NCBI GenBank assembly: GCA_002269645.1 | Contig: NIVC01000737.1 | Coordinates: 1-45,400, forward strand | DNA: 45,400 nt | Reading direction: 5' to 3' | From: Macrostomum lignano | Taxonomy: Eukaryota | Shown: piece after piece, positions 9,617 to 21,142 of the stretch | Layout of the letters: each line of letters begins with the position of its first letter | Numbering within the stretch: position 1 is the stretch's first letter | Notes under the pieces: generated by a model | Databases searched by the model: none | What the model was told of the DNA's origin: nothing | What the model saw: the letters and a program-made list of their open reading frames with translations, nothing else | Program-made: the position numbers and the translations under genes

Positions 9617-12128
9617 ATGTCTCGCCGCAGAACATTGTTTTCTAATACAGATTCTGATAGTGATGTCGAAGCTGTATTGCGGACAAGCCGTCGAGGACGT
9701 CCAAGAAAGCTCCAGAAATCTTCTGGTTTTGGTGCCACCCGTCGTCCTAGCTCAAGCTCTGCTTATGGTTCTCATCAGGATCAGTCGGTAGGGAATTATT
9801 TTTTTCCTGAAATGCCTGATAATGCAGCCGAAATGCCGCCTGAAAATTCTACTGAACCTTCAAATCCGCCTGAAGAAACTGAGTGGGAGGATCATTCCAT
9901 GTTTTCGGATCTTCACAGCAATGCGTATGAAAATTATTTCAACTTGGGTTCATGCATTCGTTGCAGTGATGCGCCTGGAATTTATCGGTGTGTCACTTGT
10001 AGGCTGGATTTCTGTGAAGACTGTAAAGAAATCACACATGGTGATTTTGCACCACACAAATTTGAACAGTGGAATTCTGAGACGCTTATGTTTGCAGATC
10101 CAGTGCACGTGCCCATGGTTGCTGCACTTTTCTGTTGTGTGGCAAGCAGAGAGGCTCGCGAATTGTCGGCTGCATCAACTGTTGAGCTAATCGATTTGTC
10201 GGGAATCGTTCAAGCTCAGATGTTTACGTGTAGTTCATGTGACAAAGTGGATGCGCTTCTCTCAATGGGTTACTTCCCGTCTTATGATGCAACCGCAACC
10301 GCCACAGACTGCACAGCCTATTTCGCCATAAGTTTATTAACACTTCTCGACAATTTGACTACTGTAGGTCGACTACCGGCTCACAGGGCAATCAAAGCCC
10401 TGTTTTTAGGTGCTACTGTTGGCCAAGGAATCTGCAGAGATAAATTAGCATCAAGTTTGTATCAACGTCTGCAACGCCACTGTGTTCTGCTAAAATTTAG
10501 ACAATTACAGATCCGCTCAGCAAAATGGCCCAAGTCGTGTCTCTTGTGTCCCGATCAGCATAATGATCGCCAGACTGTTGTTTGTGCTGATGCGCTTTTC
10601 GGCTGGCAAAGATTTTCTTCAATGGGATTCAGGCAAGCTCTAACTCCGTCAGATGGTCGTCCGCTTCCTGTTCCATTAGTGAATGTAGATGTCAAAGCAG
10701 ACGCGCCAAAAAATCGCTTAGAAGAACAAAACTGTCCAAGTTGGAAAGCTGGGGCGCTCGAGCCACCATCCCGAGGTGCTGGTAGACATGATGTGTATGG
10801 CTTTTTTGGACTTTTTTGCCGGCACAATCGTCTATTGAATGGTTGTAACATTACTACGACAGGAGAGCGGTTCTGCTACATAGAACAGTGCCTTGAGCAT
10901 TTTCTAAGAGACACGTCTGTATCGAAGAAATTGCTTCTTATCTATGACGTTGGTAAGTGCATCTTTTGCATACTATGTCCGTATAATTTAGCGGGATCAA
11001 AATAAAGTACATACATTTTTCTCACATCTCACTGCAGGCTGCCGCGTTTCAGCTCGCGTACAATCCGCAGTTACTAAATCTGGTGCTAACGTACAGGCCT
11101 CTTCATGTGCCATCAATGCATTCCACGCACTTGGCCACAAACCAAGCTGCCAAAGAAGGTTCTCTGTGCGTGTCACTCCTGGAGCGGGCTTGTGTGATGG
11201 CGAGAACACAGAGAGAGCTTGGGCACAACTTCGCCCATATGGGCATTCACTAAAGTACATGCGACCTGATCGTAGGAGCACCTGTATGTCTCAAATTCTG
11301 TTTCATTTCAATGCGAATCAATTGTTTAACACACCCCAGTGGTTCCAGCAACGTCTCAGACTTTTGGACAGTACGATAAAAAACATGTCTTCGGAAATGA
11401 ACTCACTTCTTGATGATGCACGAATACAGCAAGCTTCCGGAATTTTAGACGGAAGCTTAGTACTTTCGGAGGTTCAAATTCGGAATCTCGGCCGTCAGTG
11501 GCATCAGAACTCTCTTATAGGCGCAGTAGAAAACTCTGAAAACGACCTTCTATCTAATATTCGTTCGCTTGCAGTTCTCAGAGAACATTGGCTGCGACAG
11601 TCTGGACTAAATATGGGCCAAGGTCATAACAGAGCTTGCTTGCGCCGTGTACAAGGTTTGACTTCAGAAATGAAAGCTGATATTAATCGTCTGCCGGAAG
11701 AGACCCGGGGTTCTTTTGATCAGTATCGGAAGCCAAATAGTTCAAAGTACGATGGTTTATCTGAATCAGCTACTTCTGTCCGTTTCCGTCGGCGTGCAAT
11801 CGATCTCTATCATAAGTACGACAGAGTGAATGAGGAACTGCATATCGTATCTGAGGAATGGTATGACTTTATTGTAAAAATGGACATGGTTTGCAAGAGT
11901 CTAGATAATCAGGCTGGTTTGGCGGCTCAGTTTCGAAAACTATTTCGATCAATTTTAGAAAGAGTTGTAAATCTTGACGTTCCAGCAAGGGCAGAATATT
12001 TTCGACTCATTTTGGGCGGCGCAGAACAAAGCATTGAAAATGTTCCTCCTATTAGCAACGACTCGCCAACTGAGTCGGCGACTGAGTCTTCAGCGTCTGA
12101 ATCGGATGATTCAGAAGATACTTTTTGA
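9617..12128 (+). CDS. KDZ (Kyakuja-Dileera-Zisupton) transposase with N-terminal CxC cysteine cluster; join(9617..10952,11038..12128), 808 aa
   Basis: An 85-nt phase-1 intron (G|GTAAGT...ACTGCAG|GC) joins the two ORFs in frame and rebuilds YDVGC. KDZ motifs appear in order: CADALF, CPSWKA, GFFGLFCRH, GERFCY, YDVGC, FHALGHKPSC, GAGLCDGENTERAW. The N-terminus has CIRC..YRCVTC..FCEDC..H..PH..EQW and DLSGI..CSSC..LLSMGYFPS. No stops or frameshifts. Confidence 0.9.
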
Positions 12129-12658
12129 GCAAGTTTAAATTTTTTAGTTAGCTGAACACTTCAATTACACAGTGATTTATTGTGTCGGCTGTTTCCAAAG
12201 CACTTGCAATAAAATTATTCAAAAATTGCTGTGCCAATAGATGTCATTTTTAACCTCACTTGCACACAATAGCTCAAGTGTGCTGTGAATTCGCTGCTCA
12301 GCTGTATCATTCCTGGGTCCATGTGCTCTGCTTACACGTAGCGGACCTGTTAACGTTAATTAATTCAGTTTAATGCAGTGATGAACTGTCACTCAGTTTA
12401 TAAACTGGCGCTAAACTGTTTTGATTAACGGAGCCAAAGAGCACTTATTTATTTCGTTACCTTTTATACTACACTTCATTGCATGAAAATTAAACTGCCG
12501 TTAAGTTGACATTTTCGCCCGTTATGGTGTTATTAAACGATATGTTGGTTGCTTTTTCTCATTTTTAAGTCGTCAATATTAGTTAGGACTCAGTTTTCGA
12601 TCCCGATTGCCATTCTCAAATCCATAGAATCGACTCAAGACCCTAGCTGTAGTCCTAA
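12082..12658 (+). repeat. Intergenic module R1 (last codons of the KDZ gene, AATAAA at 12208, spacer leading to the next gene)
   Basis: Nearly identical to 18998-19588; its central part is nearly identical to 20898-21142. Confidence 0.92.
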
Positions 12659-12850
12659 GTTTTTAGTATCACAAAGATTTAGTACTCAATCAATCTGTCT
12701 TTCATGTCGACATGTGTCCACCTTTTTACAGATTTCTTATTGAAATCCGAAAGTGATTGTGTTATCTGAAACGAGTCGGCAAAAATCAATTAATTTACTC
12801 TTTTTTGTGGTAATAATCTATCAATCTTTGGCTACGATCACAAATCTACC

Positions 12851-19936: not shown

Positions 19937-20755
19937 ATGCCTAATAAACACGCAAAAATCTGTTGCTTTTTGTGCTCATGGACTGGTAGAACGTACCAAT
20001 TGTGGCGACATCGGGAAAAGTTTCACCCTACCACAACTGATGAGCAGATTCAGGCCATGATTGATCTGTCTAAAGCCAATTCGAAGGCCAAGTCTGTGGC
20101 TCTCTGCCCTCTCTGCCAGGATATGATTTCTTGCCCTAGAATGCACTTTCGAAACAACCATGCTTCCGAATTTCAAACTCCAAGTCGTAGAAAAGACCTG
20201 GCAGGTCGGGCTGCTACTAAGCGAATGAGAAAACAAGCTTCCGTACGTCTGGCAGAGCTTCGCGACTTGGCAGTTGTAAAAGAAGTGCCCATCCACTATG
20301 CTCCATTCGATCAAGTAGTCCTGGACATTCAACATCTGGTTTATAATTACGAAATAAGCGAGACAGACAACGTTGCTCCACTCCGTGCAGCTTCACAACC
20401 TGTTGCAGCCTCAACTTCTACTGCGGCATCTAGTCCTAAGCAATCTGATCGGCATTGCACATTTTCTGGGTGCAACTGTGGTGCACCAAGACTGCCTTGT
20501 GCTACATCAACAAAAGAAATTGCCAATTGTATTCCTAGATGCTCACTAGGAAATTTAAAAAAATCTCCAGGAAAAAAATTCCCCGCTGCAATCGGCCCAG
20601 TTCCTATTCCTCTCAAGCCTAAAGCAATTGTTCCTCTCACAATAGTTCCACAACCCGTTATTCGCAGACGGAAATCGTCACATGAAGTTAAAGTAACTAA
20701 ATTTGATCCAAACCTGGTGTCCTCTTCCCCAAAAAGCAATCGATTTGCTGATTAG
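19937..20755 (+). CDS. Double C2H2-like zinc-finger protein, 272 aa; paralog of the SET gene's N-terminal half
   Basis: CFLC..HREKFH, LCPLC..HFRNNH and LAGRAATKRMRKQASVRLAEL align to CPLC..HATKKH, LCALC..HYAKCH and LTGQPAIRLARKRALRRFGEL. An acceptor-like TTATTTCAG ends at 19866. The C-terminus is basic and Pro-rich, with no SET motifs. Confidence 0.75.
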   Translation: MPNKHAKICCFLCSWTGRTYQLWRHREKFHPTTTDEQIQAMIDLSKANSKAKSVALCPLCQDMISCPRMHFRNNHASEFQTPSRRKDLAGRAATKRMRKQASVRLAELRDLAVVKEVPIHYAPFDQVVLDIQHLVYNYEISETDNVAPLRAASQPVAASTSTAASSPKQSDRHCTFSGCNCGAPRLPCATSTKEIANCIPRCSLGNLKKSPGKKFPAAIGPVPIPLKPKAIVPLTIVPQPVIRRRKSSHEVKVTKFDPNLVSSSPKSNRFAD

Positions 20756-20856
20756 ACCTTTTAATAGTCCTTGAACCCCGACCCCTTCTCCTACTCACTG
20801 TAATGGCAATCTCTGAGCGAGCAGAAATACAAAATTAATTTAACAGTTTATTCTCA

Positions 20857-21142
20857 AGCACTTGCAATCATTAAAATTATCGTATAAAGTGGTAATTAAA
20901 AATTGCTGTGCCAATAGATGTCATTTTTAACCTCACTTGCACACAATAGCTCAAGTGTGCTGTGAATTCGCTGCTCAGCTGTATCATTCCTGGGTCCATG
21001 TGCTCTGCTTACACGTAGCGGACCTGTTAACGTTAATTAATTCAGTTTAATGCAGTGATGAACTGTCACTCAGTTTATAAACTGGCGCTAAACTGTTTTG
21101 ATTAATGGAGCCAAAGAGCACTTATTTCGTTACCTTTTATAC
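20857..21142 (+). repeat. Intergenic module R3 (partial)
   Basis: 20898-21142 is nearly identical to the centre of R1 and R2. ATTAAA sits where R1 and R2 have AATAAA. Confidence 0.9.

Follow-up and report, generated by a model that had tools for sequence, protein, structure and literature searches.

Three intact genes, all on the forward strand, lie between positions 9617 and 21142 of a 45,400-nucleotide stretch of the genome of the flatworm Macrostomum lignano (contig NIVC01000737.1 of assembly GCA_002269645.1; this whole stretch is referred to below as the window). They encode a KDZ transposase, a protein in which two zinc fingers are joined to a SET domain (ZnF-SET), and a second zinc-finger protein (ZnF-only). 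The interval is likely to be the gene block of a large, very young, multi-copy KDZ DNA transposon that probably extends from 1845 to 43522. The transposase, the termini common to several copies and the CA...TG ends assign the element to the KDZ (Kyakuja-Dileera-Zisupton) superfamily. A first-pass annotation of the window, made from the letters alone, had proposed an animal KDZ element with a methyltransferase gene and a zinc-finger partner as cargo. The three same-strand genes are confirmed, and the placement in an animal, here a flatworm, is supported.

Three genes and the modules between them

The genes of the interval are these:

9617-12128, forward strand: KDZ transposase gene, 808 amino acids, two exons (9617-10952 and 11038-12128) with a GT-AG intron
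12851-13848, forward strand: ZnF-SET gene, 300 amino acids, exons 12851-13254 and 13350-13848; two CxxC...Hx4H fingers and a SET8/KMT5A-like SET domain ending in FPWL
19937-20755, forward strand: ZnF-only gene, 272 amino acids; an intact open reading frame with a Cys-rich C-terminal region, unannotated

The transposase is identical (100%) to the annotated M. lignano protein BOX15_Mlig001681g7 (P0001), the record of which holds a precomputed match to the Pfam KDZ profile, PF18758. This profile matches the open reading frames of both exons (E=2.3e-7 over profile positions 3-128, and E=7.3e-6 over 170-216), and it matches the transposase of a second, diverged family (P0002, see below) at E=4e-34; upstream of the KDZ domain lies a B-box-like finger with a weak Pfam match. 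The ZnF-SET protein is identical to the annotated PAA68010.1, and its C-terminal half is the SET domain (PF00856, E=4.5e-16). The ZnF-only protein has no Pfam match, the exact protein is absent from annotation records, and a word-indexed homologue search with it gave no match at E<=0.001. Its N-terminus carries the same CxxC...Hx4H finger pair as ZnF-SET, a double-finger module that is common to all four accessory proteins of the two families. All finger ligands of the accessory proteins are intact, as are their reading frames, apart from a frame change in the family-2 ZnF-only gene that is described below. The gene models agree with the transcript-derived annotation of M. lignano.

Copies of the element are extremely alike. 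For each of the three genes the copies differ at 0 nucleotides of coding sequence; those compared include five sister copies for the transposase and L002, L003, L004 and L009 for ZnF-only (W denotes the window and L### the compared loci; L013 is on NIVC01000176.1, and L004 and L011 are on NIVC01000103.1). Members of the KDZ protein cluster occur on at least seven contigs, and one contig carries two copies that face opposite ways. Genes for the identical SET protein are found on at least four contigs, always directly downstream of the transposase, which, together with the presence of the three gene types in family 2, bears out the proposal that the SET and zinc-finger genes travel with the transposase. 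They are not single-copy genes living apart from it, and other KDZ copies do carry them.

The second family (L001, L010 and L014) has the KDZ, ZnF-only and ZnF-SET genes on one strand, in that order. Its proteins are 47% (KDZ), 30-36% (ZnF-only) and 35-41% (ZnF-SET) identical to those of the window, and it also shares with family 1, that of the window, a CAG terminus, a GGCGCCRATTTGAGCTTTCC array and repeated modules. Since the same three genes recur in a family with a 47%-identical transposase, the cargo is old and has been retained, and the comparison shows that the three genes have been kept together in two long-diverged families. Co-occurrence at several loci with differing left flanks, which the first-pass annotation proposed as a check, is seen, but the order of the genes varies and the SET gene is missing from one copy, L003.

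The ZnF-only counterpart of family 2 is at L001 13927-14536. Its reading frame changes within L001 14150-14330, after the second finger, beside a near-duplicated stretch of about 20 nucleotides (ACATGGAAA...CAATCTA); a frameshift, an unusual splice or an assembly error are possible sources. In L014, similarity to the other loci ends about 2 kb upstream of the gene, and this copy may be truncated or carry a large insertion.

The genes are tied together by near-identical modules, present in the window as follows:

12082-12658, forward strand: module copy 1, comprising the last 47 nucleotides of the transposase coding sequence, a 3' untranslated region (AATAAA at 12208), and the sequence that precedes the next gene
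13914-14069, forward strand: first part of module copy 2, with AATAAA at 14040, cut by a long interspersed nuclear element (LINE)
19154-19588, forward strand: remainder of module copy 2, from sequence comparison
20898-21143, forward strand: partial module copy 3, equivalent to 12221-12470 at 98%

The module is about 577 nucleotides long, is 97-100% identical between copies, and recurs after ZnF-SET and, in part, after ZnF-only. Identity is 97.3% between 12082-12658 and 18998-19588, and 100% between 12082-12237 and 13914-14069. Since the first 47 nucleotides of the module are the end of the transposase coding sequence (stop codon at 12128), each complete copy duplicates the final transposase codons, and in this the first-pass annotation was correct. 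AATAAA occupies the same module position after two of the genes, and the modules, read from sequence, appear to supply a poly(A) signal to each cassette. In L003, which lacks the SET cassette, the break falls exactly at the module, so that the transposase module runs directly into the ZnF-only cassette. Because the loss falls there, the modules are seen as recombination substrates: they cause the loss of the cassette in L003 and have probably caused the differing gene order of family 2, which has its own repeated 295-nucleotide module, after the KDZ and SET genes.

It might be argued that the SET and zinc-finger genes were picked up by chance and bring the element no benefit, an account favored by the persistence of L003 without its SET cassette and by the family-2 ZnF-only frame, which is shifted after the fingers. 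Both genes, however, have been kept in two families with proteins only 30-47% identical; reading frames, finger ligands and invariant SET residues have been preserved; P0017, found in another sequencing sample, is a third ZnF-SET homologue; and in both families the cassettes lie between homogenised modules. The chance that the cargo is such an idle passenger is very slim.

Termini and extent of the element

Two features are taken as the ends:

1845-1950, forward strand: left terminus and left inverted repeat, 5'-CAGTTTATGGCCGCCCGTTAGCGG..., with three CCGYTAGCGG motifs around a CCACGGTGGG palindrome
43412-43522, reverse strand: probable right inverted repeat, the outermost 8 nucleotides of which (CACCTAAC) are replaced in this copy

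The left end is defined by copies in different surroundings. Sequence is identical from base 1845 in W/L013, L002, L003, L004 and L006, while the five upstream flanks are unrelated, and all family-1 copies share the sequence of the window leftward to base 1845 and no further. In family 2 the terminus reads 5'-CAGAGCAT... or CAGAGCATATTCCC... at two junctions, again with unrelated flanks, and no inverted partner of it was found within 10 kb downstream of its transposase. A common terminus with differing flanks is thus seen at five junctions in family 1 and two in family 2, in each case for the left end only.

For the right end, matches to the motif CCGYTAGCGG are confined, within the window, to 1859-1941 and, in inverted orientation, 43421-43516, with 0.39 matches expected by chance. 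The window and NIVC01000103.1 run colinear between 1845 and 43522 (at 99.4% in the 21144-43411 part), and the homology stops exactly at 43522. Read in reverse, the right end of the element on NIVC01000103.1 starts CACCTAACGG... and is identical to the left end, 1845-1950, at 85 of 107 positions (79%), so that the two ends, both starting 5'-CA, form an imperfect inverted repeat of about 106 nucleotides. The sequence (G)CGGAAAT abuts the left end in W/L013 (NIVC01000176.1) and the right end in NIVC01000103.1, a candidate target-site duplication of 7-8 bp that is pieced together from two contigs and is never seen on both sides within one contig. The terminal motif confined to the ends, the stop in colinearity and the matching flank 7-8-mer are the reasons for preferring an element of 40-50 kb that spans 1845-43522, and the right end is probably at 43522. 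In this model the present copy measures about 41.7 kb, including a later LINE insertion of about 5.1 kb at 14070.

The model predicts an empty site, ...GACC(G)CGGAAATACTGGG..., between a PDZ-domain gene (NIVC01000176.1) and an adenylate-kinase gene (NIVC01000103.1). The left flank and junction of the window (1-12289) lie at the end of NIVC01000176.1, beside the PDZ-domain gene, and 27795-43522 is found in NIVC01000103.1; no single compared contig of GCA_002269645.1 matches the whole window. An empty site was not found, and two 198-residue models of the right-flanking adenylate kinase were absent from the protein collection.

In the first-pass annotation the candidate system was placed at 9617-21142. 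With a left terminus at 1845 and a probable right terminus at 43522 that extent no longer stands, and 42% of the interval is a LINE with its duplication. A search for terminal inverted repeats around the 9617 and 21142 borders (6900-22500) gave only pairs at chance level, and both positions are rejected as element borders.

The copies could also be imagined as a domesticated host gene cluster in a duplicated, satellite-rich region of a hidden-polyploid genome, its several versions being homeologues, haplotigs or redundancy. In favor of this, identity among all copies extends over more than 10 kb on the right-hand side, the assemblies of M. lignano contain redundancy, and several contigs are interrupted within this region. 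Five unrelated left flanks nonetheless start at one base, with two more in family 2; two copies sit on one contig in opposite orientation; transposon-type termini are present; and homeologues would not combine 0 differences in 2.4 kb of coding sequence with unrelated flanks. Almost no credence is given to a host cluster of this kind.

A number of observations weigh against the transposon as it is drawn here. The match of the transposase to CxC1 (PF18802) is weak (E=0.002 at 18.6 bits, and E=0.026 at 15.1 bits), below the Pfam cut-off of 26.9 bits, and the ZnF-only gene of family 2 undergoes the change of frame noted above. On none of the contigs are the two ends seen together with a matching target duplication; in the window, the right end has its outer 8 nucleotides replaced, with no duplication visible. 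The region 27.8-43.5 kb, with its orphan gene P0014, is found on only one contig of GCA_002269645.1, in comparison with at least six for the gene block; perhaps, then, the right half is flanking DNA, or the assembler merged repeats that are identical. The ends of four contigs fall within the element, and with copies so alike the assemblies are unreliable across it. L009 diverges inside a 387-bp satellite, and the left end of L004 is preceded by a copy of a subterminal segment, S, and an inverted copy of the right terminus.

Some of these points would be explained by a smaller element that starts at 1845 and has its other end past 21143 but ahead of the 387-bp satellite (before about 28.6 kb), in which case the terminus-like sequence at 43412-43522 would come from another, related element and 28.6-43.5 kb would be no more than flanking DNA. 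Such an extent fits the presence of the gene block on at least six contigs and of the P0014 region on one, the departure of L009 from the shared sequence within the satellite, and the terminus-like pieces scattered beside other copies (L004, L010); moreover, Kyakuja elements lack inverted repeats (PMC12730594). Yet within 45 kb the left-end motif has a single inverted partner, at 43412-43522, the match of NIVC01000103.1 to the window breaks off at exactly 43522, the rough probability of a chance match of the flank 7-8-mer is below 1e-3, and the collapse of identical repeats by an assembler would also explain the single P0014 contig. Both the shorter extent and the ascription of the right-hand terminus to another element are considered unlikely, and the 1845-43522 element is retained in what follows.

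Two compared loci have unusual surroundings. L004 1-1314 (NIVC01000103.1), outside the left terminus, is a 99.9% copy of window 42212-43222 with a 306-nucleotide copy of the right terminus, 100% identical, that is flipped with respect to the segment; aberrant transposition or misassembly is possible. At L010 1748-1980, the family-2 copy interrupts the right end of a related element, in the region of its terminal motif (...CCCCGCTAAG|CAGAGC...). The position of L004 and L010 in or against the termini of relatives hints at a target preference, but could equally reflect nesting in repeat-rich DNA.

A SET8-like cargo and its possible role

The SET domain of ZnF-SET is C-terminal, ends in FPWL, and has no post-SET domain. 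Its top 12 sequence matches in the PDB are all SETD8, the best at E=4e-13 and aligned through the C-terminal FPWL. In comparison with 30 SET8-like sequences, the invariant columns G170, Y188, G190, C226, D228, H241, E279 and Y284 are kept, as are the near-invariant positions N240, S242 and PWL296-298. The modelled domain has a predicted local distance difference test score (pLDDT) above 90, and its top 17 fold matches are all SET8, with target-normalised template modelling scores (TM-scores) of 0.53-0.83 (best about 0.8) and a modest margin over EZH2 and MLL. By sequence, conserved residues and predicted fold, the domain is classed as SET8/KMT5A-like; histone H4 lysine 20 (H4K20) is the best guess for its target, by analogy with the protein family.

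Host KMT5A (PR-Set7, SET8; set-1 of C. elegans) has the same fold, the same invariant residues, the FPWL end and no post-SET domain. The element protein differs in that identity to human SET8 is about 23-28% in structural alignments, its N-terminus is a double zinc finger specific to the element family, and its gene is multi-copy and always beside a transposase gene. A Holothuria "set-1" protein that was second-best in a full HMMER search is rejected as a relative, as it consists of mis-joined tandem SET fragments with no KDZ nearby. In Holothuria leucospilota (CM055961.1, 19.81-19.89 Mb; L012) this 799-residue protein is stitched from at least 10 tandem copies over 62 kb, with a repeat unit that is the C-terminal part of a SET8-like domain.

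Between the left terminus and the transposase lie two noncoding features:

2208-6935 (4.7 kb), forward strand: array of about 239 copies of the 20-bp motif GGCGCCRATTTGAGCTTTCC, in 157-bp higher-order units (Tandem Repeats Finder)
6936-9616, forward strand: AT-rich spacer, 28-36% GC, with no convincing open reading frame, common to all family-1 copies

Family 2 has the same array between its terminus and transposase (L001 5475-7122, 83 copies), and the higher-order units are 157-159 bp across W and L001. The array has been kept between two families whose other noncoding DNA does not align, and is a candidate protein-binding array.

A role for the cargo may be sketched as follows. The double zinc finger shared by both accessory proteins would bring them to repeated motifs of the element, for which the GGCGCCRATTTGAGCTTTCC array or the CCGYTAGCGG terminal motifs are candidates. 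There the SET protein would methylate a lysine, with H4K20 as the best guess, either in nucleosomes of the element itself or in a partner protein, and the ZnF-only paralogue could act as a DNA-binding partner or competitor, in the manner of the Myb-like second protein of PIF/Harbinger. Possible benefits to the element include anti-silencing, self-restraint, replication, repair and target choice. In its boldest form, an animal transposon would encode its own chromatin writer, the fingers tethering a SET8-type enzyme to about 240 20-bp sites and to the ends, where it would lay down H4K20 methylation; this is a speculative proposal and quite unlikely to hold as worded. It is similarly doubtful, as a further step, that such a mark would license replication, steer repair after excision or guide insertions, with ZnF-only tuning the outcome.

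SET genes borne by transposons are known from oomycetes. HarbingerS and MuDR elements of Phytophthora carry them, according to work cited in PMC12730594, and the proto-Helentron of Phytophthora carries a Clr4/H3K9-like SET (PMC4067079). These resemble the M. lignano element as DNA transposons with their own SET methyltransferase, and Harbinger also has a separate DNA-binding protein; they differ in superfamily (PIF/Harbinger, Mutator and Helitron) and in their oomycete hosts. Unlike the Helentron SET, that of M. lignano is SET8/H4K20-like and is fused to two C2H2-type fingers. The pairing of a PIF/Harbinger transposase with a Myb-like protein was not found here: the transposase is KDZ, and the accessory protein has C2H2-type fingers. 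The M. lignano element does not belong to these SET-bearing families, and its likeness to Harbinger is one of function only.

The fungal KDZ elements, namely those that carry TET/JBP and KDZ1-3 of Cryptococcus, are likewise large and combine a KDZ transposase with extra genes that include a chromatin- or DNA-modifying enzyme; their transposase has N-terminal zinc-binding regions, for which the M. lignano protein gives weak matches. KDZ elements have 7-8-bp target duplications and CA...TG ends, and some families have inverted repeats of about 100-240 bp (PMC12730594, PMC11343200); the element described here shares the 5'-CA...TG-3' ends and has a candidate 7-8-bp duplication. In contrast to the fungal elements, it has a flatworm host, a SET8-like methyltransferase and a ZnF-only paralogue take the place of a TET/JBP dioxygenase as cargo, a 4.7-kb GGCGCCRATTTGAGCTTTCC array is internal to the element, repeated 3' modules lie between the genes, and the length may be 40-50 kb against 9-11 kb. 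VANC of the Arabidopsis VANDAL (MuDR) elements, described in PMC12730594 as an element-encoded, sequence-specific factor that alters the chromatin of its own family, offers a parallel in concept, but has no sequence relation to these proteins and is not this kind of enzyme.

Within the literature searched, neither a KDZ element bearing a SET gene nor any KDZ element in Macrostomum was found to be described. The first-pass annotation had suggested that such a combination was undescribed, and within that literature this holds for a KDZ element with a SET gene but not for transposon-borne SET genes at large, which the oomycete cases exemplify. What appears to be new is a KDZ element with SET8-like cargo in an animal. 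Enzymes or factors that act on chromatin or DNA marks have been known on transposons mainly from fungi (TET/JBP), oomycetes (SET) and plants (VANC), and to these the M. lignano element adds an animal case, young and apparently active, with a different class of enzyme (SET8-like). As M. lignano can be grown, silenced by RNA interference and made transgenic, and the identical copies, the SET-less L003 and the diverged second family offer ready-made comparisons, the species allows a direct test of whether, and for what purpose, a mobile element marks its own histones. The borders of the element are also corrected here, an unrelated LINE is set apart from it, and the assemblies are shown to be untrustworthy across the repeat.

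The LINE insertion and the probable right-hand interior

The insertion that interrupts module copy 2 comprises:

14070-18872, forward strand: non-long-terminal-repeat retrotransposon, an unrelated insertion, with Pfam matches for ORF1, apurinic/apyrimidinic endonuclease (APE), reverse transcriptase and RNase H
18873-19153, forward strand: second copy of the LINE target-site duplication, 281 bp, 100% identical to 13789-14069

ORF1 occupies 14131-14970, APE 14970-16448, and reverse transcriptase/RNase H 16346-18787. An endonuclease with reverse transcriptase and RNase H, a target-site duplication and an empty site together identify the insertion as a non-LTR retrotransposon. The empty site is provided by six sister copies (L002, L004, L005, L007, L008 and L009; GCA_002269645.1), in which the 281-nucleotide stretch is single and the LINE is absent; the insertion is thus recent, private to this copy and outside the system. 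The match between 13789-14069 and 18873-19153 could be mistaken for an extra module, and is rejected as such because it is the target-site duplication. The APE and reverse transcriptase are in different reading frames (overlap 16346-16448), possibly by a frameshift or an assembly indel. A perfect duplication of 281 bp is unusually long, and the LINE inserted about 24 nucleotides downstream of the module AATAAA.

To the right of the gene block are the following:

21144-43411, no strand assigned: probable element interior, with reverse transcriptase fragments of another LINE, an inverted duplication with the 387-bp satellite (21819-28624), micro- and minisatellites, an orphan open reading frame and segment S
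42212-43212, no strand given: subterminal segment S, from sequence comparison

That 21144-43411 belongs to the element is probable from the comparison of contigs. Within it, an inverted duplication (21819-23878 against 28624-26587, 97.5%) surrounds the 387-bp satellite, with its center at 26385-26586. Reverse transcriptase pieces of a second LINE precede the arms, at 21381-21644 (forward) and 28604-29263 (reverse), and show no relation to the intact LINE at E<=1e-3. The orphan open reading frame (37780-39321, reverse strand, 513 amino acids), which is on one contig only, is 99% identical to Mlig014902g1 (475 amino acids); no homologues elsewhere and no significant Pfam domain were found for it. 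At 108-623, 30465-31703, 31702-36085 and 43965-44966 the window has more tandem repeats, with units of 20 bp (TCCCTACAAAATGACACCTG), 120 bp and 22-23 bp (TAGACACAGATCCC...), besides (ATCT)n and (ATAG)n tracts of up to 1 kb.

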